Below, one piece after another: positions 1-54,602 of a stretch of DNA of 64,000 bases; the first letter of the stretch is position 1, and every line of letters starts with the position of its first letter. The notes under the pieces were generated by a model, which had not been told where the DNA came from, made no database searches, and saw nothing but the letters and a program-made list of their open reading frames with translations. The stretch covers positions 688,757-752,756 of the forward strand of contig JAAOMT010000134.1 in the NCBI GenBank assembly GCA_016748015.1, written 5' to 3'. Made by a program: the position numbers and the translations under genes. The DNA comes from Geosiphon pyriformis uo1 (lineage: Eukaryota > Fungi > Glomeromycota).

Positions 1-2700
1 CTTAAACTTCTAATAATTTTTGTTTGTTTATTTATAAACACTATTTATTTAAATATTTATGAGATTATTTAACTTAACTAAAATTATAACTGCTTTGTAA
101 TTGATATTAAAAAAGTCAGATATAAAATTAATTTTACAATTTATGATTACAAATAACAAATTTTTATTTATAAAAATATAGTTAATAACTTTTTTAACTT
201 TTTTCAAGTTGTTTTAAGTAAAAGTCTTAGTCAAAAAATATTTATTAAATAAATTGACCAAACTCAAGTCTAAACAAAACTTGAAACTTGCATTTTTTTT
301 AGATCTATTCTTATTGAAATCTTTACCCAAAACCATAAAAAAACTAAAATTAACTATTTTAACAATAAAAATATTAATTTTTAATACTTAATCAAACCTA
401 GCTTTAGTGAAAACACTAATATACAAACTTAAAACTATAACTAAAAGTTTATTTTTAAACAAAAAATAGATTAAAATAAGTTGATCTGAAATCTTTTTTA
501 CTTTTAAAATATATTAAGTCAGAAAATTATTCATAATAATAGTTATATTAACATTATAAAATTTTTTATCCAAACCAGAAATAAAAAACTAAATTCCATT
601 AAACTTGTTATAATTTATGACTTAATATTAAACTTTAACTTTGTATCTGTAATAATTAAAACCATGTTGTCAGATTTCACATACCAATAAACAATGTCTT
701 TTTGCTTAGTTAAATTATTTATGTTTTTAATATTACATATAACTACTTTCTAAATAAGATTAATTATTAAAATAATAAATGTACTTAAAAATCTGAATTA
801 GTACACAATTGATTTAATTTTATTAAAACAAAAACAATAAATATTTCATAAGCAATAATTTTTAATTTTAAACTATTTATTTTGGTGGTTAAAATTTTAA
901 AACTGCTTATATCTAAATCTAAATTCTTATTTATTACTATTAAAAACTAAGAAAATAACACTTATAAATTGTTTAAAACCATATTTGAATTCAAATTCAA
1001 ATTTAAAACTACCAAATTAATCAAGACAAAAGATAGAAAAATAAGAGTTAGAAGTACTAATTTTAAACTGCTTAGTTTGTATACAATATTAAATACTTAA
1101 TTAGTTAGCAATTCCAGAAACTATTTCAATAAAACCAACTAAATATTAACAGAAAATTTTTTTTGAAAAATAAAAAAAAATTCATTAAATTGTAAAGCAC
1201 TAAAACAATAGAAACCAGAGAAAAAAACAAAATAAAAATTAGCAGAAATAACAACCAAAAAAATTATTTGTGCTTAAAATTTGCCATTAAAAGCAACAAA
1301 TTAAGAAATAAAAACATTTTTTTTAACATAAAAGCAAAAATAATTGAAGACAATTATTATTTAAAACAAACTTTTTATAAATTTTTTTTAAAGTAAAAAC
1401 AAAAGAAATCTTAGAATTATACTTAAAAAAGAAGTATTTAAAACATTCATATTTTTTATATTAAATCAAGTCCAATTTAGCTTATAAAAGTTTTATTTTA
1501 CTAAAAATTGGTTTTATACAAAGACAAATTTCAGATTTTTCTTAAATTCAAAACCAATCACAGTACAATAAACTTTATTATCAATTTTAAATAATTAATT
1601 AATTACATATGTTTTCTTATTAGCATTTTTTAATAAAGCACTTAAATTATAAATTGCCATTTTTATAAACAATATAAACAGAAATACTCTAAGCTAATTT
1701 TTTAATATCTAAACATCATGATTTTTTATAGTTTGGCTATATATATTAAATTTTTTTTGATTAAAAATAATTATCTTAATATTAGCAAATTAGTTTAATT
1801 TGATTTGGCAAATTTTACTACAGCTTTTTATTATAATTTAATAAGTTATAATTGAATTAATATTATTTGATCAAACTTAAAATAAGCTGTGACAATTATT
1901 TTTTTTGGCATATCTATAGAAATATTTTTAATAATTACAGTTTGATTCAAACAAAATTTTTGTTTTTTAAAATCACTATTTATTTTAATGTTTTTTTTTG
2001 TTAATAAAACAGCTTTTTTTATGCTCTTTTCTAATGTAAATATTAATTTAATTATATATTTAAATTTTAAGAAAATAGTAATTTCCTTAAAATTATTGAC
2101 TAATAAAAATAATTTTTTGATTAATTATGTTTTTGCTGTTGTTAATTTGTTTTTTACTGCTAGAAAATTAATGTTTAAAACAAAAAAATTTTTAATAGCT
2201 ACTTCTACTTAAGTTTTTACAATTTTGAGATCAATTTATTTTCTGTTCAAGAAAATATTAAGAGAAGATAGAAAAAGTTTAATATTTTCTTCTATTTTAA
2301 AATTAAAAAAACCAAAAAAAAATCATAATTTATATTAATATTCATTCTTTTAGTTTTAGAAATAATAACAGTTAAATTCAAAAGAAACTTATTATTAATA
2401 CCAACCAGAATACTACTGTTTTCATTATTACTAAACTTACTATTTATATTTAAATATATACTACTAAGATTAAACTTGATTAGAAAAATATTTTTATTAT
2501 TATTTAAGTATTTAATATTATTAAAAATAACTTTTTTTTTAAGAAAAAAAACCATCAGCAGAATCATAAAAAATTTTTTTGAACATTTTTTTCTTAAACA
2601 AATTACTACTTAAAACAGTTTCTAAGTCTATAACAAAAAGATTATTTGTTTGAAAAATATTAAAAGAAAATAACAAAAAAAACAAAAAAAACATGTTTTT
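1..2700 (-). mobile_element. Hypermutated non-LTR retrotransposon (LINE) relic: ORF1 with CCHC knuckle ghost, then start of ORF2 AP-endonuclease; runs off the left edge
   Basis: The minus frame from ~767 reads IINLI*KVVICNIKNINNLTKQKDIVYWY..IITDTKLK, which back-mutates to the APE start W-K-V-x-T-C-N-V-x-G...ETKL. 1460-1419 reads YKKYECFKYFFFKY (CX2CX4HX4C spacing). A largely intact but stop-ridden reading frame covers ~2270-1400. Extreme AT content. Confidence 0.75.
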
Positions 2701-3294
2701 TGAGGAATTTTAAATATAAAAGAAAAAAAAAGTTTTAATTATACTTATATATTATATAAATAAGATTATTAATTAAATAATAAGTAATAAAAATAAAAAT
2801 AATATAAATTTTGTTTAATAACAATAAATATGAAAAAAGATACAAAAAATAGTTTATTATTAATTTGCTATTGAACTTTTTATAATAAAAATAATTACAC
2901 TAAAACTGATTTTAATTAATTACATAAAAAGAACTTTAAATAAAAACTTTTAATTAAAGCCAAAATAATGTTTTTTTAACAGTTAAAATCTGTTTAATGT
3001 CTTTTATATTAAAAAAAATAGTTTAAAAAAATGCTATTTATTTACTTTTATTTTTAAAAAAATTTGTTTTTTTATTATTTTTTGCTTTAAATATAATTAT
3101 AAAAATATAAAAAAAATAGAGTTTTTAAAATTTTTTAATATATATTTATATAAAATTACAATATTTTTAAAATTTAATATTATTGTTTTATATATATTGT
3201 TTTTTTCTGTTTTTTTATATATTATAGTATTTGTATTGTTGTTTTAAATAATACTATTTTAAATATTATTATTTATATTATTATTATTTTATAA

Positions 3295-3330
<36 letters not shown>

Positions 3331-4514
3331 TATTATGTTTTAACAAAGTGTAATTCTATCAATGTTTAAATTATTTATTATTATTAGTAAACAAACAATT
3401 AAAATTAAATTAAAAATCAAACAATAAATCAAATCAAATCAAATATTTATATAATTAAAAAATCATATTTAATATTTTATTTGAATTTTACAAAAATAAT
3501 TAAAAATCATAAATAATAATAAATTATTTTAATTATTTTTTTATTTTTTATTTTTTCAATTAACTAATATTATATTTTTTTATTTATATTATAAATTAAT
3601 TTATAATATAAAATATATTAATAATATATATACATATAATTTAAAGTGTAGTTTAATATACACATATTCTGTTTTGAACACTGGTAATGCTTTTTTTATA
3701 CACATAACCAGCCATCCGAATTATAAGTATGTTATTTGATTTAATTAATTAACTAATATTTTTGTATTTTTTAAAATCTTAAAGTATAAAATATATTTGT
3801 ATATTGTTTTTAAATCTTTAATTAAAAATCGTATAAAAATATCAATTTATTTATCATACAACCACTTTGGATTTGGCTATCATAAAATTTTACGCTTTTT
3901 GATTATTTAACTGTTTATTCATTATGTAACACAATTCGCTAGTTTTATTTATTGGGGTAAGAAACAATTGGATATTTAATATAACCCAAATCCTAAAAAT
4001 AAAATGACTATTTTGAATATAAGATTTTGAATTAAAAACTACTTAAATTACATAAATAAGGTTACGGATTCAAAAAGCTATGAAGATGTAACATTATCGT
4101 CACCCTTACAGAACCCTTTTATAGAATCGCTCAAAGCAAGGTAAATCTAATCGGCTAAAATCAGCATTCCCAATGATTAACTTTCAAGGGTAGATACTAT
4201 CAATTGCGCACCTTCTTAAAACTAGAACACTTTAAAAGTTTTGTCATCACAACGTTTTTACACAACCAACCCTTTATCTTTTTGTCACTATTTTTTTATT
4301 CTTTTGCAGCCTGCTCTTTGAGTGAAAACGAGACAAATTTGCATAGTAAAACACTAGAGGGCTTGGGTGTGTGAGAAAGACGGTTACACTTTGAGATAAA
4401 TAGCTGGGTCTTAGTTTTGAGACTTGGATCATTTATTTTTTTTGAGGACTTTACTAAAAAAAATATATAAGTTCTTTGTTTTGCTTTTATTCTGTAAACT
4501 TTTTTTTGAAAAAT

Positions 4515-7208
4515 ATGGCGCTGGATCGAGCAAAGAAAGTTGTGAACGAGAAACATGAACGTATATTGCTTGAAATGACCAAACAGCCAGGGAACGACAC
4601 GTGTGCGGATTGTGGCATTAAAGGTGTGTGTCTATTGATATTTACAAAAGCATGGAGGCTTTTATCTCTCTGAAAGTTGGAATTTTTTGGACGGATTTTT
4701 TTTCAAATTTGGTTACCATGTTTTGTCTGACCATTGAATAGTTTTTTTGACGGGTGTTTTTTCTTTCATTGTCAGCACCACGTTGGGCATCGCATAATCT
4801 TGGGGTATTTTTGTGTATCCGATGTGGAAGCATCCATCGTAAAATGGGAACACATATAACTAAAGTGAAATCGATCTCTTTGGATTCGTGGACCTCGGAG
4901 CAAGTTGAGGTATGGTCGAACTTGAGATTCTTGGATCGTTTGAAAATTTGTGGCAATCAATTTAAATTCCTCATTAATTCAATGTTAATTTTCTCTGTAT
5001 TTCTTGATTTTTGCGGTTAGAATATGAAACAATGGGGAAATCTAAAAGCTAATGCAAAATGGAATCCACGTCCGGAAGTTAATCCTGTTCCAGTTGATGC
5101 TTCTGATGGGTTAGAAACTCATTTTTTTTCCGTTTTCTTTTTGAGGTTTTCAATCTAAATTTAAAATCTTTGTGATTTACAAACTAAAAGTGAAATGGAG
5201 CGTTATATTAGGAATAAGTACGAGAGGAAATCGTTTATGGATGGAAAGGTTTGAATTCAAAATCGTTGATACTATTTTCTTTAGAAAATGTTAACCTATA
5301 TATCTATCGATGTAAACTTTAGCCAATTCATATGAAAAGTTCATCATCATTATCATCCTCTCGCTCTACAACTGCTTCAATACTGTCACCAGCAAAACGG
5401 GCAGAACCAGTCGTTACGTATTCTGATCGAAATGATAAAGGAACCCATGATAATGCTTTACGCAAACTTTTAGATATGGGGTTCACAGATATGACTAGAA
5501 ATCGAGATGTATTATCAACCACAAATGGAGACCTTAATGCCGCGATCGAGATTCTATGTAGGCTACCATCTGGTGGTGGTGGTAGTAGTAGTAGTAGTAG
5601 TAATAGTGGGGGTGGGGCTTCTGCTTCCTCATCTCCAGCAAAGCCTCCGACTAGCTTAAAATTAAGTCGCAGATCAACTGTAACCGACGATGAAAAATTA
5701 ACCGCCATTTGGAATATGGGATTTCATGATGAATCAAAAAATCGTGATGCATTACGACGAACTGGTGGGAATGTTGAAGTTGCAGCTGCACTATTAAACG
5801 ATGAACGATCAAAGCCATCCATAACCGAATCTGCTGTGAGTGTTTTCGCGCCGAAATTGAATAGCTCAAATGACGTAATAAACGGAACTCCGCAGCAAGA
5901 TCAACAACGGAGGCAGCATAAATTGCCTTTAACACAAAAGCAATCGCAGGCCTCACTTATTACTGATGGTATTACCAGCTCACCTCAGAGTTCCCCCCAA
6001 TTAATCACGAAGCAAATCAATTCTGGAAATCCGGGTGGACTTGATCAAGGAACTAACAATCTTTATGGTTTGTGGAATCAAATTTACAAATAAGATTTAT
6101 GTTAGCTTAAAAATCAAATAACCTGCAAATTTCTACAGGTTTGACTTTGCAACAACACCATCTTCAACAGTTACAGAATCAACAGAATCAACAGCAGCAA
6201 TTTCAACAGTTACAAAATCAACAGCAACAGCAACAACAAATTCAACTTCAACAGCAGCAGCAACAACAACAACAACAACAACAACAACTTCAGCAGCAAC
6301 AAACACAACAATTATTACAACAACAACTTCAGCAGCAACAAACACTTCAACAAAACAGATTTGATAAAAATTCAATACTATCTTTATATAACAATAATTC
6401 AAGGCAAAACTCAATATCATCCAGTTCTAGTGCTTTAAGTGGAATCAGTAGCGCTTCTCAATTCGGTAGTACCCCTGTCACTCAAAATCAATTTGGTCAA
6501 GTTCAATTTGATAGCCAATCATCACAACCGAATTTCTCTTCGTTTGGGAACATGCCTGTAAATGGCCTTGGAAACAATGGATTTGCAAGTCAAATCACTA
6601 CTCTACAAAATGGTTATGGTACGAATTCAGGTGGATTCAATAGGTCAAATCAAGGACTCACCACGCCGGTTTTAAATCCGACAACAGTCGCTATGAACAA
6701 TTCAAATACGGTAAGCATTTGAAATTCTTAATACTATTCTCCTTTAAAACTTTTTTTGATTCATGATTTTCACATTTAGTCGATCGGTTTGGAGAATTAT
6801 TTAATTAGTCTGGGAAATGGGCCACAACGACAAGATTCACGACCTTTTGCCAATACAACATCAATAGTAGGGACCCGATCGGGGAACACGACACCTTTTG
6901 CCGAATTGGTGAATTCTTTCGGTAACCTGGGAATGGGGACACCAACGCGTCAACCCTCATCATCATCTGGGTTCTTTGATGTACAACAACAGCAACGACA
7001 AACATCACTTCCAGTATACGGTGTTCCCACCCAACAAAACACTACATTTTCAAGTACCCAGACGAATCTGAATTTTCAACAAATTTCACCTGGTCCCGGT
7101 TTTGGTAGTACGCTAAATCAAACAGCGAATCCTCCAGTAGCAGCTAATAAATTTTTTCCGGGAACTGGCATGGGTGGAAACATCAACCATAATTGGTGGC
7201 ATGAATAA
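4515..7208 (+). CDS. ArfGAP-domain protein with two UBA domains and a polyQ/low-complexity tail (Gts1/Ucp3/SMAP-like), multi-exon
   Basis: Spliced exons give [44 protein letters not shown] and [12 protein letters not shown] motifs LLDMGF..AAIEIL and IWNMGF..AAALL. Q-rich exon at ~6140-6710. Confidence 0.92.
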
Positions 7209-13599: not shown

Positions 13600-15900
13600 A
13601 TTAATATAAATAACAACCATATTAGTAAAAACCAAAATAATTATTAATATAACTGTTGCTACTACTGTGCTAAAATTTATGAATTACCAAGTTTTGATAA
13701 AAATGTCAATTGTATTACTTAATTATTTATATTTTTATTAATTAAAACTAGTTACAAATTGGTTTATTATAATTTTATTATAAATTCTGAAAATAACAAT
13801 ATATTAAAATTGTTAAAATATGATATATTTAACAAATTATTATAATATTATTATTATAATTTATTATAGTAATAATTTACAAATATTTACATATTTTATT
13901 TTAATTAACAAATAAGTAAAATTTATTATCTTAGTTTACATAAAGTATATTTATTTGGTTTTCAAAATAAAGCAATATGTAAACAAATTAATTATGTACT
14001 AAATAAATATAAAATTATTAACAAAGATTTTAATAGTATATTATTTAATAAAATAAAAAAATTAAATAAAAACAAAAAACATTTAAAAATTATTTGTAAT
14101 AATACAAAAAAACAAAATAAAAATAATGTTATTATTTGATTTTAATATTTAATAATTTGTAATTATTATAAAAGTATTATATTAAATTTTATGATATTTA
14201 AATATATAAAATTCAAGTATGATAATAGTTTTGAATTGATTAAAAAATTATAGTATAAAATAACTGTAAATTATGTAATTTATATTATTAAAAAATTATT
14301 TTCAATTTTAATATTAATTTTTTTTTAAATTATAAAAAACAAAAATATTTATTTATTTATTAAGAATATTATTTATTTTAAGTTAATATTAAATAATTTT
14401 AATTTAAGAATTTTTGTTTTTTATAAAAATTTTTTTTCTTTATTTGTAATTTTTAGGTATTAAATCTATTTATTTGTTTTTTATTATTATTTAATATGTG
14501 TGATTTAATTATTATTTAGTATATATAAATAAACTAGATATTTATAATTAAATATAACTTATGTTTTTACTATATAACCAATTATTTAAATTAATTAAGA
14601 TTATATTATACATTTATAATAATATTAATACTACTATTTAAATCAAAAAACAATATATATTTATAACATAAATCAAAATCAAAAACTTTATTAATATTAA
14701 GCATAAAAATTATATTATTTGATAAATATCTAACTAAATTATACAAATTATATAAAACAAAAAAAATATTATTAACTAAATCATTTTTTTTTATTGTAAT
14801 TTTATATTTAAATTTATATAATTATCTTTTTTTTCTATAATTTTTTAAATAGCAAACAAAAAAAACTAAATATAATTAAGCCAATTTATTATTTTTAAAT
14901 ATTAAAAAAACTTTAATATATTAAATATTAAAGATAATACTCTTATATATAAATATATATATTTAATTATTTACCAGAATTAAAAATAATAAAAATAATA
15001 TATTAAAGAAAAAAATTCAATATTTTAAAAGATTTTTTAATAATTTTAAGTAAATATTAGTATTTAATTTTTATGTAAAAATATAATCTGAAAATTTAAT
15101 TTTTTATAATAAAAACAAATTATTTTAGAGTACTGCCTATTATATAAATAATTTTAAATAATAACAAATAGTTATTTATAAACAATATTTATTAATATAT
15201 ATACAAATTAACTGTAAATTTGCTAATAAAACTTAAACTTATATAAAAATTTATTTATTTTATATTTAAGAATTAATTAATTGTAAAAGTAATTTTTGTT
15301 TTAAAAACCAAACTTTTTTACTAAAATGCTAATTTAAAAACTAAAAAAATATTTTTAATAATATTATCTTTTAAAACAAATAATATATTATTTTATTTTT
15401 TTTAACTTATTTTTTAAACATTATTATTATATTTTTTATTAATAAGAACATAATGTTTTTTAATATTAGGTTTAATTTTAAAGTAAGTAAAAACATTATT
15501 TTTTAAATTAATTATTAAAATTTTAAATAATAATTTTTTATTACTAATTTTATTATGTAAAACTTTTATAATATTATATATTAAAATTGTATTAATAAGT
15601 ATAAACTAAAACACTATTTTGTTAAGTAATATTTTTACAGTTTTTTTTCTATAATTTATATTTATAAATTTGGAATTTTAAAAATATTTTATGTTTTTTA
15701 ATTTTATGTTTTTTTTTTGGTTTATTATATATAGATATTAATAATTATTTATTGCTTTGTGTTTTTTATTCTTTTTAATAAATTTTATAACCAATTTTTT
15801 CTTTATTTAAATATTTTTAAAGTATTTAAGTATTATTTATTTTAAAAACATATGAACCAATTTTTTTACTTTGTTTTTTTTTAGAATGCTTCTAATAGTG
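13600..15900. repeat. Extremely AT-rich hypermutated interior of the TIR element (probable erased transposase)
   Basis: Very few G or C, no ORF, contiguous with the mutated right TIR arm. Confidence 0.6.
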
Positions 15901-16533
15901 CTGTAATTCTTTGGTTTTATAATGGATTTAATGTAAATTAGTTTTATATATTATTTTTTATATAAAAATAAACTTATATGAAATATGATATCAAATTAAT
16001 ATAGATTTAAAATACAACCATAAATTCAGACATAAGCCACTGCTATGTCATCAAAGTTCAATTTTTTTCTGCTACATCAGCCATTTTTAACTTACATAGT
16101 CAAATGTTCACTTTGTCTGGTTTTTTGTTACAGTGTACCCCATATAAATGAAGGAAGATGTATTTGGATTTGATTATTAGATTGAGTTTTTGAAGCACTC
16201 AAGCTCGTTTCTATTGGCATTTGATCAATATCACGTTTTGACACAAGAGTTGCTTACTAATTTCGACAAATCGCTTTTTAAGATTGATTTCCTCGCTCGC
16301 AAATGCCGCGTAATCACTGACGTAACCCTGTGAACTGTGACCCAATTGCTAAAATCTAAAAAAAATCTTGAACCGAATGTTCAATTCGACTTTTTCGAGG
16401 AGCTTTAAACTCTTCAAGTGTTAATGTTTGAAACTTTCTCAGTCTTTAAGTTTCTCTATCCAAGCACTTAAAGTGATCCCTTCGAGAAGCTTTATTATTG
16501 TGAATAAAGTCCCGATTGGTGTAAAAGATAACT

Positions 16534-35063: not shown

Positions 35064-37302
35064 TTAAATCCAAGAAGATTCGTAAATATTTTTCTGTGCA
35101 ATAGTTAACTCTGGTTTGGTTGGATTTGAAAAGCTTTTTGGTGGAACCTCAATGACAGAGGTTATTTCAGGGAGATAGAGGGATTCATATTCACGAAGGT
35201 TAGCCTCTGCCACTAGCCGGGATTTGCGCAAAACGTTCACCTCAAAACTAAGATTATTCTCAAAAGTGGAGTCAGTATCATCTGGAGGACACTCAGAATC
35301 TTCCTCCTCTTCATAATCATCATAGATTTGTTCCGGCTGGTATACTTGGGATCCTCCCTCATCGACATCTAATTTTACAGTTTCTGCTCGGCCAAATTCT
35401 TTTTGAAGATTTTGGACAAACATCAAAAATTTTTCCTCCGCTTCTCGAGCTGCATTGAGTTTTGCTTGAATAGAAGCCTTTTTTATTTCCTCCTTGGCTG
35501 CCAACTTTTTTGCAGCGGAAGCTGCATTTTTTGCTTCCAATTCAGCGATCTTTGCTTTAACTGTATTGGGTGTTTCTTTTACAAGGTAAGTTTTATCTTT
35601 GTTTTCAAGTATTTGGCCTGGAAATATTTCAGCCGCCTCGGGTTCCCTTTTCTCGGCGGATGCGGGAGCTGGTTTTCCTTTGACGAGAATGGTTTTATTC
35701 TCGATAATGGCTTTTTTTGGTACCAAGGGGGGTGACAGTAATTGAGTTATTGTTTGGTGTTCTTGTTCATCTTCTTGAGAAGACTGCAATACTTCAGCAA
35801 TTGGAGATAGTGCAATACGGAAAGGTGCTATTGACATTATCTCATTAGTGGGACTATTTGACTCGGGAACTTCATCCAGAGCAAGCGAAGACACTGGACT
35901 GTCCACCAAAGCCATTCTTTCGTCATCGAGAAATGACGAACTAACGCTTTGGTTGCTGCTGTTCGAAATTCCGGCATCAATTTTCGGAGCGGCAGTTTCA
36001 CGGAATTTCAGCTTTTCATTATAGATCGCTACATCACCACCACCCGGAGTATATTGAATATTGTCGAGCGAACCGACGCGTGCCTTTACATTCTTAAATG
36101 TAATTTTGTCCGAAAAAATTTGAATATTACCCCCCTGTGGGACGTAGTTAATATTTTCCAAAGATCCGATTCGAGACTGAACCGATGAGAAATTAGGCTT
36201 TTTAGAGAAAACTTTGACCTCCCCGCCTTTAGGGGGCAGTGTATCGAGTGAGCCTTCTTTAGACGCTAAAGATAAGCACAAGAAAAACTCGTTAAGACAA
36301 AATTACTACTATTAAAGACTAATTATTTATTATAATCTCCACCTTTTGGGGTGTGCTTGATATTATCTAATGATCCAACACGTGACTTGACTTTCGAGAA
36401 ATCTGGTTTGGCTGAAAAGATCTTTTTTTCACCACCAACTTTAGGTGTGTATTTAATATTATCCAAAGATCCGATACGGGGTCTTACATGGGAAACATCA
36501 ATTTTTTGATCAGCTGGTATGTGAGGTAATTTAACTGATGCGGAAGTCGAGATTAAATCTGGCTGAGATGCACGTCGTTTTGAGGGTTTTTGAGTTTCAG
36601 TACTTGATTGAACTGATCTATTGATCCGCGACGGAGTACTTTTTGTTGATCGATTTGATTTTAGTGTAGACAGTTTGGCTTGTGTGGATCCTACATTTGC
36701 GGTTGCTACCAGTGTTCCTTTAGAGGTGGGTGGAAGAACAGGGTTAGAAGCCTTTGGAATGGTTGAAGATTTTTTCAGGATAGTTGACGGAATAGGTTTT
36801 GTAGGAGTCCAAAGGTTCTTCAGAGTATTTAAGTTGTGACCAGTTTTTATAGGTGTTAAAGGAGTTTTTAAAGTGTTTGAAACGGACTTAGAAGGGCTTG
36901 AAGCATTCTTTCCAGGTGTTTTTGTGGGAGTAACAGTATTATTACTATTACCGGGTGACGTATTTGGGGTTGTTGGCAGGGAGTTGACTGGTGTCTGAAT
37001 ACCTTTTTTTCCACTACCTAAAGAATTTTAACAGTGTAAAATAGAAGAAACCGTGACTTCCTTCTTCATGATAACGCTTGCCAAAAAATTTTATTACCAT
37101 TCAATGTAACTTGTGTAGGCTTAGTAGCAGTATTTGCCGTCACGTTATTTAACGCCGATAATATTTGGGTTTTATCTTCAAAGATAGTGTTATTCTTTGC
37201 AACAGTAGTTCTTGGAACAGATTTCATCGAACTAACAGTATTGGGGCCACCACCACTAACTTTCAATGCGACCACATTTGCTTTTTGTTGCAAAGTTGTC
37301 AT
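35064..37302 (-). CDS. Tau/MAP2/MAP4-like microtubule-binding-repeat protein, ~693 aa, 3 exons (37302-37098, 37017-36343, 36265-35064)
   Basis: Four repeats (VRPRIGSLDNIKYTPKVGG, VKSRVGSLDNIKHTPK, VQSRIGSLENINYVPQGG, VKARVGSLDNIQYTPGGG) followed by EKLKFRETAAPKIDAG. Exon phases add up to an open frame. Confidence 0.88.
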
Positions 37303-38127: not shown

Positions 38128-39981
38128 TTATTGGATTTTTTCAGGGTATTCCGGTGTAATCTCGTGCAATATTGGATCACCCATTCTTGCTATTAACCTC
38201 GTCATATTATCATCTCCTGAACGTGTCGGAACTTTTTCCATTCTAGCATGAGGAAGATAGGCTGGGAAGTTGACAACGAGATAATTGATCTGATAAAGAT
38301 TTTAAAATGTGAATTTCATTTTAGCGAATGGGTGCAATAGGTTTTTTGGGTTGATTTGAAAACTTACTAATTTTTCCCGCATTAAAACTTTAAGTTTATT
38401 TCCATCTTTCAAATTATTTGCCTATAGAAAATGAAACTTTATTAGACAAAAAAAAATTATTTTTTTCTTGGACATAAATTCATTGGATATTCTTTACCGT
38501 CATTTTTGCCCGAAGTTGCAATGCATTTTCCTTTGCTTCAAAAATCTTTAAAAGATTGCGTGATTTATGAGTATACTTATTTGTGCTAGGAAAATTTTTG
38601 CTTTAAACCACTTACATCAAGGCTTGCGTTTCTGTGGTCCCATTGTTCTGATTTTTGCAAATCTTCCATAAACTGTTTTCGCAAATCTTCTAGAGGGATG
38701 CCATAATCAACGTAAATGTCAAAGCTAGCAGTTATGGCGCCTCCATTACGCGTTAAATTTTCGAAGGTTCCTCCGATTACACGAGATAAGGGAATAATCA
38801 TGTTTCTTTCGTCAGATGTTTTTAATACAATGTATTGTGCCTGGATTTCCTCTAATTTCAAAGACCAAATGAAAAATTAGATTAATCTCTTTCAATGAAA
38901 CATCAAAGAATATAGAAACTTACGAACAGTTCCTTGCTCCCCATCAAACTTAACAATATCCTCAAGCAACAAAGGTTGCGTCAATGCGATTTGTAATGAT
39001 GCTACTAAATTCTATGTTGACATATATTCGGAAATTAATAAAGATGATTTTTCAAGTTAATGATTTTCAAGTTGAAATTATTTATACCTCCATAGATGGT
39101 TTCGTTGCTAGACCCAGAAACAAGGAGGCTACACTGGCACTTGCCAATAAAGCGGTACCAAACTCTTTAGCATTGGGGAACGTAAAAATAATTCCAGATA
39201 CACCAAGAACAAATATTATTGCGTATAGGATTCTTGTCGTGACCACCAGTTGAGTAGAAAGTCTTTTGGATTGCATATCAGCTGTTTCTTTACTGAAACC
39301 GTCGTCACGTGATAAAGCGTGGGAACCTGCTTTTACAGCATTGATAGCACACCATGTTGAAGCAGCAATTAAGATTATTAAAAAAGCATGTTGGATCGGT
39401 TCCAAAATTGACGGATGTACGTTGGTAATGAATTGAAGGGTAAGAAGTATTGATCCCACGGGAAACAATATCAAAGTTGGTGCGTAACTTTGGGATGAAA
39501 AAAACCGAGGAAAGTTAAATTTCAATTCGTCATTGTTTATTAATTTCCAACAAAGCATAAATGGCCGCTTGAATTTTCTAACTTTTTTTGGTATGGATCA
39601 GTAACTTTCATGCATCCCAATAAAGAAAATGGTTTTCTAAGCTAACCCAAATTTCCTTAAAAGGCGGGGATGGTCGTTTTTTTTTTTGGATACTTACCAC
39701 AAATCTACAATTTCGTTGTCAAATTGAAAGGCCGACATTTTCGCAAACCGTCTATCAAATAAAAATATATTGTATTAATGACAGATCAGCCCAAGAGCTC
39801 TAATTCTCATAAAAACATACTTTAAGATTATATGAAGAATCGAGTGCACAATTATCGACCCAAAAGCGATACTTCCGATAATAAGTAACGGGAGTAAGTG
39901 ATTATTCTTTCCAAAGGCCAAGGCTTTGACATCATAGCCTGTATCATCAGTACTACTTTCACTCATTGTGGTATTGGACAT
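38128..39981 (-). CDS. Small-conductance mechanosensitive channel (MscS family, compact bacterial type), 8 exons
   Basis: GTALLASASVASLFLGLATKPSME|NLVASLQIALTQPLLLEDIVKFDGEQGTV|EIQAQYIVLKTSDERNMIIPLS..FENLTR..IYVDY..W..MREKLINYL..FPAYLP. Several N-terminal TM helices. Confidence 0.88.
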
Positions 39982-40442
39982 TGCTTGAGACTCTTGTTAG
40001 CACCAGCGTTATAGGGTAAAAGCAAATTGTTTTTTCTTTTGAGATGAGGTCTAGAGCTTCTAAGACTCGGATAGGTAGGTAATAAATATATAAGGATCAA
40101 GAGGGCCAACACAGCAAAGGAATTTGAAACATATTCATTTTTCCCGAGACTCCTTTGTTTGCTTTATAGCTCTCGAACAATGATAAACATAATAACCGAG
40201 CGATAAGTGCAACTACTTCAGTTTCCTATTGTAGTCTTGTTGATGCCCTTGCACGTTTAAAAATGGTGTAGCCATAGAAATTTCGATTGTACAGCGGTAG
40301 CAATTAAATTCATATAAATAGCCGCGATCACCCTTTTCTTTCTCACACCGCCTTTAGGTGCATATCAGTAACGAGAATTTTTTTTTTGTATAGCCCTTTC
40401 CTTTCTTTTCATACCTTCTCCACACTAAGAATTCTTGAAAAG

Positions 40443-41656
40443 ATGAGTTTATTCCAAACCCTCGAAGGTCTTGCTGGTGCCGCCATAAAGGCAAAACTGG
40501 GTGGTGGTGGACAGCAAGAAGACTCTGGTTCTGAAGAAGAAGGTATCGTGTTTTATCGAGAATAAGAAATATGCACTTGTTTATTCTTTACAAGCTCGGT
40601 GTTCTTGCGGAACTAAAACAAATTTTAGAAAACACCAAAAACATAATCGAGTAGGACCAATAACCCCTTTGTGTAGCGTTAAGATTAAATACAAAAAAAA
40701 AAAAGCCAAATTTTTTTGAATTTTTATTTGATGCATGTATTGATACATGCATCTTTCACTCTAATTTCATGTAGCCTCTCCGACTAGACCACCAGCAAAA
40801 CAAGGTTGACCTTTAAATTTTTTTACATTATATTGGTAATTTAAAAACTATCAATACGAATTGACTGAGAACTTTAATTTACTCATACAGGAAATCGCCC
40901 TTCAAATCTTGATGTATCCGATGCACATAAAATTGCTGCTGAGGATTCGGGTCATGATCCAGGTATTCATTTGATAAATAATTTTGAACTTTGTCTAGCA
41001 TTTCCTCATCATTAATGATAGAAAATTGGTTTCATAGAAATCTTTGAGAATGCTCTGAGCAAGGCTAAAAGCAAGGTCTCACGCCGGGATGAGGAGGACG
41101 ACGAGGAAGAGGAGGATGAAGAGAAATATGCTCAACTTCACAAAAAAGTATACAAGCAAAAAGCCAATGCTGAAGATGGTTCGGACGAGGAGGTCAGCTA
41201 TGAAATTATTTGAAATTCAAATTTATTCGCTTTGCACGCTGTATTGACAATTTCACTCACCTTATAATATACATGACAGGAGACTCCCAGCTCATCTGGT
41301 CTCGGTAGTGCTGCTGCTATGCAAGCCTTTAAGATGTTAAAAGGTGGTAAGGGCGATGGTGAGGGTGGCAGTGGTCTCCAATCTCAACTTGTTGGAGTTG
41401 CTATGAGTGAAGCCGCGAAATTGTGGGAAGGCAAGTATCCTTATTAAAATCCTAGATGTTAAAAATTCAAGTTAATATAATTTTTTGAACACATTTATTT
41501 TTGAAATTAGCACGTGGTGGAAAAGGTGGTGGTAGTAAGGAGGATGCCGTTACTCAAGCAGCTACCATGGCCATGAAAATGCTGATTGCGAAAAAGGGAG
41601 GTGAAGGTGGTGGTTTGTCTAGCTTAGCTTCTCAATTTCTCTCTAAAAGGGAGTAA
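40443..41656 (+). CDS. Small Gly/acidic-rich conserved fungal protein ('beta-flanking protein'-like), 6 exons with one GC-AG intron; absent from the ORF track
   Basis: Spliced: MSLFQTLEGLAGAA..HKKVY..GLGSAAAMQAFKML..LVGVAMSEAAKLWE|ARGGKGGGSKEDAVTQAATMAMKML..GGLSSLASQFL. Confidence 0.8.
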
Positions 41657-49400: not shown

Positions 49401-52030
49401 TTGAAAATAATAATAATAAAATAGTTTCACGATACAAAAAAATTAAAATTAAAATTAAATCAAGGAATTGAAAATGATTCAAAATTCAAAAAAAGATGAA
49501 TCCCTCTTGAAAGAGAATCTATTTTTTTTCACAGATTTTCAGAAAATATCATTTTTTAATCGTGTGAATTTTTATATATATATCTATATGTATATATGTA
49601 TATGTATATATTTTGCAGTAACTAAAAGAGTATGAATTTCAAATTAAAGCTAGATGATTGTTCATCCCTCAAAAAATTTAGGTCATACTCACGCTTATTA
49701 AAAGATCTTTTTTTACGATTTTCTCTTTAAAAACAAAATTAAATAGTGAAATTTAAATGGTTCACATTCGAAAATTGGTCTCAGTTCAAGACTAAAAAAA
49801 AATTGAATACCATCAATCAATAAAATAAAATAAAAATATAAATATAAAATTTTTATTATTGAAAGTTTTAGGTAAAGTTGTTGGACAAAAAAAAAAATAT
49901 ATATACGCCATCAAAGAAATATCCCTATCCTATTCTATCCTATCCTATACTATACTATACTATACTATACTATACTATACTATACTATCCTATCCTATTC
50001 TATAAACAGTTAGAATTTCAAAATATTGAATTAAAAAACATTATAATTTCATTCATAAAAATTTACGAAATAAAGGCCTCATAATAAAAAGTTTAATTCT
50101 GTAACACTAGGATCGAAATAATTTTTTTCTCACTCCACATTTTTAGGATTCCCTTTATGGATTCTTGGGAGTCTAAAAAATCTATAATAAATATTTGGTA
50201 GAATTTTGGGAATGAATTTAATCGACTCATTCTGACACAACACAACATGACACGTATACGTACACGTACACGACACCCATATAACACAACACAACACAAC
50301 ACAACACAACACAACACAACACAATACAACATAACACAACACAACACAATACAACATAACAATATAATACAAATATAACACAACACAAATCCTCGATCCC
50401 TCCCAAAAAATTAGCCTTATTCAAAACTAAAAAAGGTATTTTACTAAATCTCCGTTTCCTAGTAATACATGTGTAATGATCAATATGCTAACCCTGAACT
50501 TTATTATTCAATTGGGTAATATTCAATCATTTTATGAATAATCTGTTTTTGTATCAAATGATATTACACACATGGCATATTTCTTTTCTATTGAAATGCG
50601 AGATGATTGAGTTATGTTTAATCATTGACTAAACATTGAATATCCCTTTTTTTATCTTATTTAAAATTGAATGTTCGAATTTAAGAAATTTGTAGATGTT
50701 GAGAACTTTTCGTTTATGTAAATTAATGTCGTAGGTACATGAGTAGATTTTTTACAATTTAGTTTCATCCTTGACTGGATCCATTTTGTCGTAATTCCAT
50801 CACGATCAATAGTCAGTCAGTCTCGGAAATAATTTTTTTAAAGTTGATAATTATGATGATGATGTTGATGATGTTGATGAATTGAATTGGAAAAAAAAAA
50901 AAGTCTTTTGGCAATGAAAAACATTTATAATTTCAATAAACTAATTCTCACGATATATATTAAAATAGTTGTTTTACAAGTTAAAAAACTTTTAAAACTT
51001 TAGATTTTATCATAACTAGTAAAAAATCGACAAATTATTTTTAAACCCTGGCTTTTTTTTTTCCTGGAAATCTTCGATTTCTACTATTGCCAAAAATATT
51101 GAATTTTCAAGATCACAGATCACGAGAGCTTATAATTTATTAATCTATATATATATATATTAATTTGATAGATATTTTTTTAATATCAAAAAAATATTCA
51201 CAATTTTTGTCATTTCGAATAAAGAGTTCATCACTGCTTTGAAAAAAATAAAAAAAGTTATAGATTAATTTATTTATTTATTTACAATTATTACCCCTAC
51301 ACCTACACCTACACCTACCCTTCTTACCCTTACCCATACCCATACCCATACCCTTACACTTACACTTACACTTACACTTTAGCCTAATTTATTTCATGAA
51401 TTTTCCTGAAAAGAAAAAATAAAATATTATTTTAAGATAATAATTTTTTAAAAAATATTTTGAACATATTTTGGGGAATAACTTGGTTGTGGGAATAATC
51501 TAATTAAAAAAAAAGTTAATTTCAAACTTTAACCCCTGAAAGAAATAACGATTCATTCTTCTCAAGCCCCTTTGTAAAAGGCTAAATATCCTCGAAAAAA
51601 TAAAAAAAAATAAAAGTTTTTAAAACAAGAATCTGTTGTTGTTGTTATTGTTATTGTTATTGTTGTTATTGTTATTGTTGTTGTTGTTGTTGTTGTTGTT
51701 GTTTTTTTTACTAAATTATGAATTTTGGAATTAAGAAATTTATGAATTTTCGAATATTTTTGCCAAATATCCATTTGTTGTTGTGAATATATATATGAAT
51801 AATGTTTCCCGAAGATTTTCATATTTTCCAAGTTTCAGGTCTCAAAGATTTGAGTGTGGTTCAGATCTACTAAATAATTATTAAAAACCTAATTTCACTT
51901 ATGATTATTATATATCCATGTGCTCATGGTGAAACAATGCCAAACAGTTTAAGATAGAAGATCTTTTTAACCAGGAAATCGGAGGGAAATTTCTTTATCG
52001 ACCTTGAAAAGATAGGAAAAATGTAAAAGA

Positions 52031-52068
<38 letters not shown>

Positions 52069-52164
52069 AAAAAGTTGTAAAAATCATTTAATTTCATGAT
52101 TCACGCTGTATCATCATAATTTTTAATTTTTAATTTTTCACATTTCACATTTCATATTTCTTTT

Positions 52165-52212
<48 letters not shown>

Positions 52213-53315
52213 TCATTTTTTTTTAAAAAATTTAGATAAGAATATTATTAGAATTTCCAAGTTACATTGTGATGCTTTGAGAATGAATGAAATGATAAAG
52301 ATTTGAATAAATGGTTGTTTTTTTAATTTATTCATTTTTTTTGTTAATATCTTGAATTTACAATTTAACTTTTAATTATATCATTTTATTTTATTTTATT
52401 TTTATTTTATTTTATTTTATTTTATTTTATTTTTCACTTCTCTTTGTTGTAATCTAGATTATATATATATATTGATCAATTAAAATATCACTGAAATTTC
52501 GATTAAAAAATATATTTTTTTTTTAGCAGAATTTCATATCATTAATACACACACTATATTTCATTTCTGTTATTCATAATGTATACATTTAAACTATTTT
52601 ACTAATATTTTAAAAATTACTAATCTTTAAAAATTACTAATCTTTTTTTTTAAATAATCAAAAATTGCTAATCTTTTTTTTAAATAATCAAAAATTACTA
52701 ATCATCATTATTAATTTGAGTCGGCAAAAAAATAATAATTTAACCAAAGAGAATCTTTTGTAAATAAATAAATAAATGAATGAATGAATGAATGAATGAA
52801 TGAATGAATGAATGAATGAATGAATGAATATATACATATATACATATGTACATACATATCTTTTAACCTTTTTAGTACAAACTTTTTCATGGTAGACAAT
52901 CTTTTTTCATGGTAGACAATCTTTTTAAATGTATGTTTTAGTTTATCTAGTTAAATAATCTTTTTCCCAATATTTCGATTCGATTAGGTCATGTATGTAT
53001 TAATTTTAATTTTAATTTTATTTTTATTTTAAATCAAAAAAAAAAATTTAAAAAATTTTCTAAATTTTCTAAATTTTAAATTCCCTAAAATTTTATTATT
53101 ATTATTATTATTTTTTTGAAACAATGATATGAGATTTCGGTAATAAAATTTCGCCTATCGCTAACTCTCTCCCTTTTGGGATTACTGAAACATACTATAG
53201 TTTCGTCATAGTTCCATGATAATATTTTTTTTTACATTCTTGATTCGATATGAAATTTTTGTAATATCATTTCAGGAAAAAATAAAATAATAAAAAGAAA
53301 TAAAGAAAAAAACAT

Positions 53316-53829
53316 NNNNNNNNNNNNNNNNNNNNNNNNNNNNNNNNNNNNNNNNNNNNNNNNNNNNNNNNNNNNNNNNNNNNNNNNNNNNNNNNNNNNN
53401 NNNNNNNNNNNNNNNNNNNNNNNNNNNNNNNNNNNNNNNNNNNNNNNNNNNNNNNNNNNNNNNNNNNNNNNNNNNNNNNNNNNNNNNNNNNNNNNNNNNN
53501 NNNNNNNNNNNNNNNNNNNNNNNNNNNNNNNNNNNNNNNNNNNNNNNNNNNNNNNNNNNNNNNNNNNNNNNNNNNNNNNNNNNNNNNNNNNNNNNNNNNN
53601 NNNNNNNNNNNNNNNNNNNNNNNNNNNNNNNNNNNNNNNNNNNNNNNNNNNNNNNNNNNNNNNNNNNNNNNNNNNNNNNNNNNNNNNNNNNNNNNNNNNN
53701 NNNNNNNNNNNNNNNNNNNNNNNNNNNNNNNNNNNNNNNNNNNNNNNNNNNNNNNNNNNNNNNNNNNNNNNNNNNNNNNNNNNNNNNNNNNNNNNNNNNN
53801 NNNNNNNNNNNNNNNNNNNNNNNNNNNNN
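53316..53829. other. Assembly gap (N run); further 20-N gaps at 56521-56540 and 57675-57694
   Basis: Runs of N. Confidence 1.
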
Positions 53830-54602
53830 AAAAAAAAAAAAAAAAGAAAACAGTGTGGTGGTGGTGGTGGGTGGTAAATCCCCGCTGGATAAATTCAATT
53901 CGATCATGTTTCATGTGATGAATTCCAGATCCAAACACACCATTTTGAAAGAAAGATAACCTGTTTTTAATATTATTATAACTCATCAATTAGCTTATAA
54001 GAATACATATACATATATATATATGTATATGTATCTGTATATATTCTTTATACATATATTTATTTATTTATTTATTTATATGTTATGTTAGTGTATATTA
54101 TATATATACTATTTTTAAATTGAACTTTATACTAAAAATTTTATTTTAATCAATTGTTGTGTAATATCCTTCATCAATGTAAACTCATAATCTATTGTAG
54201 AATCAATTAAACTTCTTAATATACGTAAGAATTCCATAATGTCAAAAAAAAAAAAAAAAGTGAAGAGTTATTCAAATATATAAAGGAGGTCGCTATCCCA
54301 CTTCACCTTTTCCTTGTATCGCTTTGTTTCTCAGTTTTTAAACAAACGAACAAAAAAGAAATCTATACATCATACATCCATACAGATCCACTCAAAATAT
54401 TATAATCATATCTTTTTGTGGGCTCGCTAAAATATTACAAAGACAACAATAACAACAATAACAACAAGAAGAATCCTTTTCTACATAAACACAAGAAATA
54501 GTTTTTTTTTTTTTTTTTTTTGAATTTCTCAAGTTTAAAAAAAAATCACCCCCCATCACTTTTAAATTTATATCTTTTTCTTTTGATCCTTTTATTTCCA
54601 CA

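Follow-up and report, generated by a model that had tools for sequence, protein, structure and literature searches.

The window analysed here is a stretch of 64,000 nucleotides from Geosiphon pyriformis uo1, and all coordinates below refer to it. Its minus strand carries a three-exon gene for a protein of 668 amino acids. The exon translations agree with the public protein product of the locus, G9A89_018515 (P0001), as 43 + G + 224 + A + 399 residues, and this product served for every analysis of the complete protein. The gene is laid out as follows.

35064–37302, minus strand: whole gene; stop codon at 35064–35066, annotated ATG at 37227–37225, in-frame upstream ATG at 37302–37300
37098–37227, minus strand: exon 1; residues 1–43 and the first base of G44, by substring check against the public protein
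37018–37097, minus strand: intron 1; 80 nt, GTAATA...CTTTAG, phase 1
36343–37017, minus strand: exon 2; basic Ser/Thr/Pro-rich region, repeat 1 and most of repeat 2
36266–36342, minus strand: intron 2; 77 nt, GTGGAG...CTTTAG, phase 1, 25% GC, inside the P-x-GG end of repeat 2
35064–36265, minus strand: exon 3; half repeat, repeats 3 and 4, pseudorepeat, acidic tail and stop

Two in-frame ATGs, 25 codons apart, are candidates for the start: the one at 37227 is used in the public model and the one at 37302 was chosen in an earlier note on this DNA. A stop codon closes the reading frame upstream of 37302. Both introns are AT-rich and have GT..AG ends. The transcript evidence consists of contigs from one RNA run (X1). 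One contig joins 36343 to 36265 and skips the 77 nt of intron 2, with GT..AG ends on the minus strand, and exon 3 is covered from 35132 upward. At the edge of intron 1, one contig stops at 37018, adjoining the exon 2 boundary; exon 1 is matched by none of the contigs of this run. One contig has an additional base in a T6 run (36113–36118), which would shift the frame if real. If intron 2 were retained, translation would yield a product of two repeats with GGDYNK at its end. An in-frame acceptor at 36228/36227, which drops the 13 extra residues and restores a canonical repeat 2, was rejected because the sole spliced contig uses 36267/36266; it could still serve a minor isoform. The Ambispora orthologue has no intron 2, and its residues 85–647 are encoded by a single exon.

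The N-terminal part and the core of the protein contain the following features.

36524–37015, minus strand: basic Ser/Thr/Pro-rich region, residues 45–208; counterpart of the tau proline-rich region
36431–36523, minus strand: repeat 1, residues 209–239; core RIGSLDNIKYTPKVGG; PF00418 39.7 bits (six-frame)
36344–36430, minus strand: repeat 2, residues 240–268; core RVGSLDNIKHTPK; PF00418 profile positions 1–28 of 31
36222–36265, minus strand: half repeat, residues 269–283, ASKEGSLDTLPPKGG; first codon split with base 36343
36129–36221, minus strand: repeat 3, residues 284–314; core RIGSLENINYVPQGG; PF00418 49 bits; aligned to the tau repeats in 6cvn_D
36036–36128, minus strand: repeat 4, residues 315–345; core RVGSLDNIQYTPGGG; PF00418 52.4 bits, profile positions 1–31
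35970–36035, minus strand: pseudorepeat R', residues 346–367, VAIYNEKLKFRETAAPKIDAG; HMMER-aligned to the tau pseudorepeat
35862–35909, minus strand: tau-like C-terminal motif, residues 388–403, LVDSPVSSLALDEVPE; MAFFT-aligned with the ADSPQL(A/S)TLADEVSAS end of fish and newt tau

The Tau and MAP tubulin-binding repeat profile (PF00418, curated cut-off 27 bits) matches exon 2 with 81.6 bits (E 3.7e-23) and exon 3 with 95.2 bits (E 2.1e-27). Members of the family are recognised by three or more tandem repeats of about 31 residues that exceed this cut-off. The profile search that the earlier note had proposed thus bears out its four microtubule-binding-type repeats, and the half repeat comes in addition. 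The full count is four 31-residue repeats and one 15-residue half repeat that straddles intron 2. A six-frame search of the whole genome with PF00418 gives four repeat matches of 39.7–57.4 bits, all of them here, at window positions 36033–36508. Repeat 2 is interrupted by intron 2 before the GG and has no GG of its own; its six-frame match runs into the intron (GGD) and covers profile positions 1–31 with 57.4 bits. The half repeat is seen in the spliced RNA contig and in the public protein, is absent from Ambispora, and forms an insertion relative to human 3R tau in the HMMER alignment. All four repeats contain the stretch V(R/K/Q)(P/S/A)R(I/V)GSL(D/E)NI, which follows the family pattern V-x-S-K-(I/C)-G-S-x-(D/E)-N-(I/L) with Arg instead of Lys ahead of (I/V)GS. 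The anchor point of tau is the interdimer groove, contacted by Val256–Lys267 (PMC6279373).

Directly after the last repeat comes EKLKFRETAAPKIDAG, which HMMER aligns to the tau segment of PDB chains 6cvn_D and 9cgx_A, in agreement with the likeness to tau R' that had been noticed before. The pseudorepeat NEKLKFRETAAPKIDAG aligns with the human tau chains, and it retains its motif across Glomeromycotina, Mucorales and chytrids; the role of R' in the tau family has been described (PMC5221586). The best solved relative is microtubule-bound tau (6cvn_D, E 1.6e-35), and the alignment spans repeats 3 and 4 and the pseudorepeat. The tau-like C-terminal motif at residues 388–403 is conserved in Glomeromycotina. 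Judged by sequence, the repeats, the pseudorepeat and the C-terminal DSP..L.L.DE motif support homology of the protein to Tau/MAP2/MAP4.

Immediately N-terminal of the repeats the chain is basic and rich in Pro, Ser and Thr. Residues 1–205 have a net charge of +24 with 21 Pro and 66 Ser and Thr, and 10 S/T-P sites fall within residues 1–215. The basic stretches previously listed as markers of this region, TPVNSLPTTPNTSPG, TPTKTPGK and KTPLTP, are all located in the exon 2 translation. Along the protein the charge is laid out as +24 / +12 / −21. An N-terminal acidic projection domain is typical of tau and MAP2, yet it is variable, and its sequence is unconserved even among animal members. It is absent here, where all 40-residue windows from 1 to 220 are positive, and a Pfam search that allowed E values up to 1 did not match the MAP2 projection domain family.

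The C-terminal tail contains five further features.

35787–35825, minus strand: conserved P..(A/V)LSPI.E island, residues 416–428; P, P, I and E invariant in an alignment of 11 tail sequences (A3)
35391–35570, minus strand: long predicted helix, residues 501–560; AlphaFold2 helix at 157–216 of the modelled segment, block pLDDT up to 96
35268–35348, minus strand: acidic patch, about residues 575–601; net charge −14 in the 561–600 window
35199–35252, minus strand: LSFEVNV.RKS.LL motif, residues 607–624; L, F, V, N, R, K and L invariant in A3
35067–35114, minus strand: C-terminal motif PELT.AQ...Y..SW(I/L)-COOH, residues 653–668; E, Y, S and W invariant

The 308 residues that come after EKLKFRETAAPKIDAG have a net charge of −21. 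The tail of about 300 residues had been called acidic and coiled-coil: it is acidic, but its confidently predicted 60-residue helix is Ala/Lys/Glu-rich and shows no regular heptad pattern by eye. In the tail alignment of 11 sequences this helix occurs only in Geosiphon and Ambispora (Archaeosporales). The LSFEVNV.RKS.LL motif is predicted by AlphaFold2 as a short helix (265–278 of the model) and is found in 11 of the 17 fungal sequences screened, all Glomeromycotina or relatives. The SW(I/L) motif is the extreme C-terminus in every full-length Glomeromycotina orthologue, with a predicted helix at 313–323 of the model (block pLDDT about 76), and was not found in the Mucorales, Mortierellomycotina and chytrid members inspected. 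The terminal ELT.AQ...Y..SW(I/L)-COOH fits the pattern of a class I PDZ-type S/T-x-hydrophobic end. Overall, the tail is predicted with a mean pLDDT of 54 and no globular domain. A Pfam search of the protein gave no match beyond PF00418, an ESM Atlas look-up with residues 595–668 returned no usable match, and sequence matches to the tail in the homology search and the tail alignment are confined to Glomeromycotina. No result connects the tail with the projection domains at the N-terminus of the animal proteins, and the idea that their acidic domain was moved to the C-terminus finds no support. It is a lineage-specific, mostly disordered extension after the tau-like C-terminus, with conserved helical motifs. 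The three Glomeromycotina-specific islands are most simply read as docking motifs; such strictly conserved short motifs, including the S-W-(I/L) end, argue for specific partners. We suggest, tentatively and with more doubt than confidence, that this C-terminal projection is a distinct Glomeromycotina architecture whose conserved helices dock a partner, so that the very long microtubules in aseptate hyphae are linked to nuclei, organelles or other filaments. If true, this would be a tethering role unknown among the animal members.

Members of the family bind microtubules and favour their assembly or stability; by analogy with tau and MAP4, we infer that the Geosiphon protein binds microtubules too. 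Each repeat would lie extended along the outer protofilament ridge, with the V-x-S-(K/R)-(I/V)-G-S-L-(D/E)-N-I stretch as its anchor at the interdimer groove. Tandem repeats would then staple consecutive tubulin dimers and so make the lattice more stable. The basic flank may add affinity for the acidic tubulin tails, and the C-terminal tail, acidic and largely disordered, would stick out from the lattice. Members of the family detach when a MARK/Par-1-type kinase phosphorylates the KxGS serine. Each of the four Geosiphon repeats has the corresponding serine, and so does the half repeat, the motif being RxGS and not KxGS. The genome also has a gene in which Pkinase exons precede a KA1 domain (G000:C701). 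The RxGS and S/T-P sites make regulation by MARK/Kin1-type and proline-directed kinases plausible, and phosphorylation at these sites would release the protein.

Relatives of the protein were found in about a dozen Glomeromycotina species, in eight Mucoromycotina (Syncephalastrum, Pilobolus, Benjaminiella, Cokeromyces, Mycotypha, Rhizopus, Bifiguratus and Helicostylum), in one member of the Mortierellomycotina (Linnemannia) and in four chytrids (Rhizophlyctis with two genes, two species of Spizellomyces, and Powellomyces). PF00418 proteins also include a marine/environmental group (P0217, P0183, P0201, P0179 and P0181); a further homology search aimed at this group was dominated by fish tau and contributed only Helicostylum. 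A tree was built from an alignment of 87 columns. It recovers each of the Glomeromycotina orders with support, follows taxonomy in this part, and joins Geosiphon with Ambispora at 99/95. Vertebrate tau, represented by four sequences, is a clade of its own at 100/99 with Geosiphon outside it, so that the protein does not belong to the MAPT clade. When no constraint is set, fungal and animal sequences intermingle, five changes are needed, and the deep branches are without resolution; a single fungal clade is not rejected (p-AU 0.245). The vertebrate MAPT clade goes back to duplication of a MAP4-like gene, and the related nomenclature argument is given in PMC4815063.

The strong likeness of the repeats to vertebrate tau is the sole point in favour of animal contamination or an assembly artefact, which we regard as practically out of the question. 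The gene lies in the middle of a contig of 1,793,056 bp (1.79 Mb), has short AT-rich introns, and is single-copy, with PF00418 matching this locus only in the 128-Mb genome. The order and orientation of two neighbouring genes are common to Geosiphon and Ambispora gerdemannii, and about a dozen Glomeromycotina, each sequenced independently, have orthologues with these lineage-specific C-terminal motifs. This synteny and these orthologues refute contamination, and the locus is a resident fungal gene. Horizontal transfer of the family from an animal to fungi is a different matter, and it too is very improbable. It could explain why the best non-fungal matches to the Geosiphon repeats are vertebrate tau (38–48% identity), why fungal and invertebrate sequences interleave, and why the fungal distribution is patchy, with no Dikarya among the 30 named representatives. 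The high tau scores, however, reflect slow evolution and dense sampling of tau. No supported branch places fungi within an animal clade, the vertebrate tau sequences stand apart, a single fungal clade is not rejected, and the Glomeromycotina part of the tree matches taxonomy. Four deep fungal lineages (Chytridiomycota, Mucoromycotina, Mortierellomycotina and Glomeromycotina) carry the family, so a transfer must predate the split of chytrids and Mucoromycota and would be hard to distinguish from vertical descent. Presence in Chytridiomycota and all three Mucoromycota subphyla favours an old, probably opisthokont-level origin with later loss; the earlier note had raised the possibility of an ancient opisthokont Tau/MAP. 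The most economical reading would be that the family was inherited vertically from an opisthokont ancestor and lost in those fungal lineages that are without it. The timing of origin and loss rests on 30 named representatives out of 1437 clusters, in a survey not aimed at unicellular holozoans, Dikarya, Zoopagomycota or Blastocladiomycota.

A true member of the family might also have a main job other than lattice stabilisation, such as cross-linking to actin, organelles or nuclei through the tail, formation of condensates, or motor regulation at the kinesin site. The tau family competes with kinesin-1 at a weak site while it stays anchored at the interdimer groove (PMC6279373), and tau co-organises actin and microtubules (PMC4421749). 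The majority of the Geosiphon protein is predicted to be disordered, and the three strictly conserved tail motifs, among them the C-terminal S-W-(I/L), fit such a role as well. Nevertheless, no partner was identified, neither Pfam nor the ESM Atlas look-up adds anything for the tail, and roles of this kind supplement microtubule binding and do not substitute for it. We therefore consider this alternative unlikely, though worth keeping in mind. Our preferred reading, to which we give a probability of roughly 0.8, is that the locus encodes a genuine, vertically inherited structural MAP of the Tau/MAP2/MAP4 family that would act as a lattice stabiliser.

Tau, MAP2 and MAP4 are generally described as animal, largely neuronal proteins. 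Chytrids, Mucorales, Mortierellomycotina and arbuscular-mycorrhizal fungi have canonical members in which repeats, pseudorepeat and C-terminal motif are intact, and this implies that the module predates animals. The suggestion that the family serves coenocytic hyphae in particular finds no support, because non-hyphal chytrids also carry it. Nor is the family new to fungi, since orthologues already stand in public databases under automatic names: 'microtubule-associated protein tau-like' in RefSeq (Gigaspora; 'isoform X1'), 'Microtubule-associated protein' in UniRef, and 'Putative Microtubule-associated protein' for Rhizopus microsporus. A literature search for a described fungal tau-family protein returned only a passing mention of the Rhizopus delemar member, which Sundermann et al. 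2016 included (PMC4815063), and yeast MHP1 (PMC2121081), with no functional study. The novelty is modest, as the family is widespread in early-diverging fungi and already labelled in databases. The basic function of the module becomes open to study in the simple and partly transformable Spizellomyces, Mucor and Rhizopus, and for mycorrhizal biology the protein is a candidate organiser of long microtubule tracks in coenocytic hyphae. This value is tempered by the prior database annotation and by a function that is wholly inferred.

Among known systems, yeast MHP1 was credited in 1996 with a binding sequence like that of MAP2, MAP4 and tau (PMC2121081). Going by description only, Saccharomyces cerevisiae Mhp1 (MAP-homologous protein 1) has 1398 aa and a single stretch of weak similarity, with no tandem canonical repeats. 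It is presumably not a PF00418 match. With vertebrate tau (MAPT), MAP2 and MAP4 the Geosiphon protein shares the module order: a basic proline-rich region, 3–5 PF00418 repeats with (K/R)xGS...PxGG cores and a pseudorepeat (KL.FRE.A...D.G). The repeat region is 38–48% identical to that of vertebrate tau, and the DSP..L..L.DE motif near the tau C-terminus is common to both. The Geosiphon cores are RxGS whereas those of tau, MAP2 and MAP4 are KxGS, and repeat 2 is interrupted by the half repeat and an intron. In contrast to tau and MAP2 there is no N-terminal acidic projection domain, and about 265 residues with Glomeromycotina-only motifs extend beyond the tau end. Vertebrate tau forms a separate clade in the tree, and in the nomenclature of Sundermann et al. 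2016 (PMC4815063) only vertebrate genes bear the names tau, MAP2 and MAP4.

Tandem PF00418 repeats are also common to the Rhizopus delemar MAP (PMC4815063), Syncephalastrum BCR43DRAFT_523003 (P0065), Linnemannia gamsii (P0204) and Spizellomyces punctatus SPPG_00495 (P0207). The pseudorepeat is kept as well, e.g. as EKL.F.ETA.P.ID, in Pilobolus, Benjaminiella, Cokeromyces, Rhizophlyctis and Powellomyces. Compared with the Geosiphon protein, the Mucorales, Mortierellomycotina and chytrid proteins are shorter (about 200–480 aa) and are without the Glomeromycotina tail motifs; one chytrid subgroup has a divergent PLGGHV.IV end. Full-length orthologues occur in Glomeromycotina, for example in Gigaspora margarita (P0021), Rhizophagus clarus (RclHR1_01160015, P0007) and Ambispora gerdemannii (P0003). 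These orthologues have 4 to 8 repeats and match the Geosiphon protein in the type of repeat, the pseudorepeat and the SP.SSLALDE motif. Only Geosiphon shows the half repeat and intron 2; the long helix is shared with Ambispora alone, which also has the neighbouring genes in common. All of them share the P..LSPI.E, LSFEVNV.RKS.LL and ELT.AQ...Y..SW(I/L)-COOH motifs with Geosiphon.

The product of the minus-strand gene between 37302 and 35064 carries a Tau/MAP-type signature far above chance. Against the Pfam model PF00418 (Tau and MAP tubulin-binding repeat), exon 2 scores 81.6 bits and exon 3 scores 95.2 bits (cut-off 27), so the search proposed in the earlier note bears out its claim of four repeats. 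When the 128-Mb assembly was scanned in all six frames, PF00418 gave four repeat matches, all at this locus, and the gene is thus single-copy. The repeat cores read R(I/V)GSL(D/E)NI..(Y/H).P.GG. Whole-protein analyses are based on P0001, the public product, which matched at 100% in the homology search; the exon translations account for it exactly (43 + G + 224 + A + 399 = 668 residues).

Features of the gene (window positions, minus strand) and of its product (residues)
Exon 1: 3' boundary at 37098, minus strand
Intron 1: 37018-37097, minus strand, 80 nt, GTAATA..CTTTAG
Exon 2: 36343-37017, minus strand
Intron 2: 36266-36342, minus strand, 77 nt, GTGGAG..CTTTAG, 25% GC
Exon 3: 36265 to the stop at 35064-35066, minus strand
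Repeat 1: residues 209-239
Repeat 2: residues 240-268
Half repeat: ASKEGSLDTLPPKGG, 15 residues between repeats 2 and 3, first codon split by intron 2
Repeat 3: residues 284-314
Repeat 4: residues 315-345

The basic S/T-P-rich region ahead of the repeats is also present as described. Residues 1-205 include 21 Pro and 66 Ser+Thr and have a net charge of +24; ten S/T-P sites lie in residues 1-215. The repeat block carries +12 and the last 308 residues -21, which agrees with the acidic tail of about 300 residues noted earlier. Among solved structures, microtubule-bound tau (6cvn_D) matches best, at E 1.6e-35, in an alignment that covers repeats 3-4 and the pseudorepeat, the tau-type R' segment behind the last repeat, and places NEKLKFRETAAPKIDAG opposite a 17-letter tau segment, confirming the R'-like segment. 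The pseudorepeat pattern EKL.F.ETA.P.ID is also present in Mucorales and chytrids, so that the conserved unit is the repeats plus pseudorepeat, not the short repeat alone. In a MAFFT alignment, LVDSPVSSLALDEVPE pairs with the ADSPQL.TLADEVSAS motif of catfish and newt tau, which lies a few residues before the tau C-terminus. Just upstream of repeat 1 (P0001 residues ~188-197, window 36560-36600), Geosiphon and Ambispora share K(R)RR(A/S)SQP(D/E)L; Paraglomus, Gigaspora and Rhizophagus lack it. By its sequence it resembles a basophilic-kinase (RRxS) and 14-3-3-type (RxxSxP) site, and its location is roughly that of the tau Ser214 site.

The annotated start is the ATG at 37227; 25 codons further upstream, in the same frame, stands a candidate ATG at 37302, and a stop lies beyond it. 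Contigs of X1, the only public run containing the stretch, span 35132-37018 and leave exon 1 outside; the run is available solely as contigs, and the kind of library it represents is a guess in the record. A contig links 36343 to 36265, skipping exactly the 77 nt of intron 2. An X1 contig also carries one additional base in the T6 stretch 36113-36118, enough to shift the reading frame in repeat 3, and a synonymous T>C at 35430 (A>G on the minus strand) in the Lys547 codon; these differences could stem from an error in the homopolymer or from a different isolate or nucleus. Intron 2 starts within the P-K-G-G end of repeat 2 (region 36222-36350). Left unspliced, the frame would run on to GGDYNK and a stop, which would complete repeat 2 and yield a protein of two repeats. 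Splicing to another in-frame acceptor, 36228/36227, would remove exactly the 13 extra residues and leave a canonical repeat. Ambispora lacks both the half repeat and intron 2, suggesting that a partial duplication took place recently in Geosiphon.

The product, 'hypothetical protein G9A89_018515 [Geosiphon pyriformis]', is encoded on a 1,793,056-bp contig (window at G000:C710:688757-752756 in the assembly). In Ambispora gerdemannii (L008 4899-8245), relatives of the window genes 38131-39996 and 40878-41444 lie next to the orthologue, both on the same side and in the same order and relative orientation. Contig size and this gene order rule out contamination by foreign DNA and, with the X1 contig skipping intron 2, establish a resident, spliced fungal gene. 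The largest ORF of gene 38131-39996 (39082-39558) gave no Pfam match at E<=0.001. Elsewhere in the window, an exon-sized ORF at 44256-44780 matches orotidine 5'-phosphate decarboxylase (115 bits) and two UBA domains are encoded by an ORF at 5332-6093; as neighbours in a eukaryotic genome, both are unremarkable. Positions 1-4000, 14001-16000 and 52001-54000 have 9-17% GC, amid genes of 35-40% GC.

The alignment of 11 Glomeromycotina tails (A3) shows conserved islands within otherwise free sequence.

Conserved islands of the C-terminal tail (A3)
SP.SSLALDE, tau-like
P..(A/V)LSPI.E
(D/E)LSFEVNV.RKS.LL
PELT.AQ...Y..SW(I/L), very C-terminus

AlphaFold2 on A3 gives the tail a mean pLDDT of 54, so it is predicted to be mostly disordered. 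Residues 501-560 are confidently modelled as one helix of 60 residues, seen only in Geosiphon and Ambispora, and short helices are predicted on the LSFEVNV and terminal motifs. Homology searches with the tail matched Glomeromycotina only, its motifs were not found in the inspected Mucorales, Linnemannia and chytrid proteins, and a Pfam search gave no link to animal projection domains. These results speak against the earlier proposal of an acidic domain moved to the C-terminus and in favor of an added extension; the tail is lineage-specific, placed behind a tau-like C-terminus. This Glomeromycotina-specific module has not been described previously.

Relatives were collected by named homology searches and an exhaustive profile search with A2, an alignment of the last two repeats and pseudorepeat from 12 fungal sequences. 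The profile matched 1437 cluster representatives at E<=1e-3 (297 at E<=1e-30), and organism names were assigned to 30 of the 1437.

Fungal members of the family
Glomeromycotina: Geosiphon, Ambispora (2), Paraglomus (2), Rhizophagus clarus, Funneliformis (3), Gigaspora, Cetraspora, Racocetra
Mucoromycotina: Syncephalastrum, Pilobolus, Benjaminiella, Cokeromyces, Mycotypha, Rhizopus microsporus, Bifiguratus, Helicostylum
Mortierellomycotina: Linnemannia gamsii
Chytridiomycota: Rhizophlyctis rosea (two genes), Spizellomyces punctatus SPPG_00495, Spizellomyces 'palustris', Powellomyces hirtus

Named animal members include flatworm, rotifer, nematode, mollusc, nemertean, mite, urchin, tunicate and vertebrates. 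The named members span four fungal lineages and many animals; Dikarya are missing from the 30 named of 1437 representatives, which is not proof of absence. Five PF00418 proteins (P0217, P0183, P0201, P0179 and P0181) come from environmental or metatranscriptome sources only, including Tara-type 'merc' records, and their ends read GGGD..VYDE. Protists are a possible source, and in that case they would matter for how old the Tau/MAP family is.

A tree of 35 named sequences (87 columns, 23 fungal rows) groups Geosiphon with Ambispora at 99/95, recovers Paraglomus, Gigasporaceae and Glomeraceae each as a supported group, and separates vertebrate tau at 100/99. At its deep branches fungi and animals interleave in the free tree, with five changes needed; constraining the 23 fungal rows to a single clade lowers the log-likelihood by 10.9 units, and the AU test does not reject this constraint (p-AU 0.245). 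The tree fits vertical inheritance within fungi and does not favor a recent donor among animals; it does not date the origin.

Tau and MAP4 repeats extend along the protofilament ridge, with the strongest contact an anchor point at the interdimer groove, tau Val256-Lys267 (PMC6279373), and in cells dissociation is more than sixfold slower owing to the pseudorepeat (PMC5221586). The anchor stretch is kept in all four Geosiphon repeats and the pseudorepeat is intact, which makes lengthwise stapling and stabilization of microtubules the likeliest function. The basic flank would supply extra affinity, the RxGS serines and ten S/T-P sites may act as release switches, and the acidic tail would extend away from the lattice, offering its conserved motifs to putative partners. 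The genome has two KA1-domain loci, G000:C701:1857000-1862500 (L007) and G000:C660:424001-424135 (L006). L007 has protein-kinase exons upstream of KA1 on the same strand, an architecture of the MARK/Par-1/Kin1 type. Because fungi generally have such kinases, this gene shows only the existence of a candidate kinase.

That fungi have this family is already on record. Literature searches found no study dedicated to any fungal PF00418 protein, but database names and two papers precede this work. The Gigaspora orthologue is 'microtubule-associated protein tau-like' in RefSeq, many members are labeled 'Microtubule-associated protein' in UniRef, one Rhizopus microsporus entry bears the name 'Putative Microtubule-associated protein', Sundermann et al. 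2016 placed a Rhizopus delemar protein with distinct architecture in the outgroup (PMC4815063), and a MAP2/MAP4/tau-like sequence was reported in yeast MHP1 in 1996 (PMC2121081). The Tau/MAP family in fungi is therefore already in databases, and the distribution documented here is wider than appreciated. The Geosiphon protein is not tau proper; it has every sequence-defined feature of the Tau/MAP2/MAP4 family except the N-terminal acidic projection domain.
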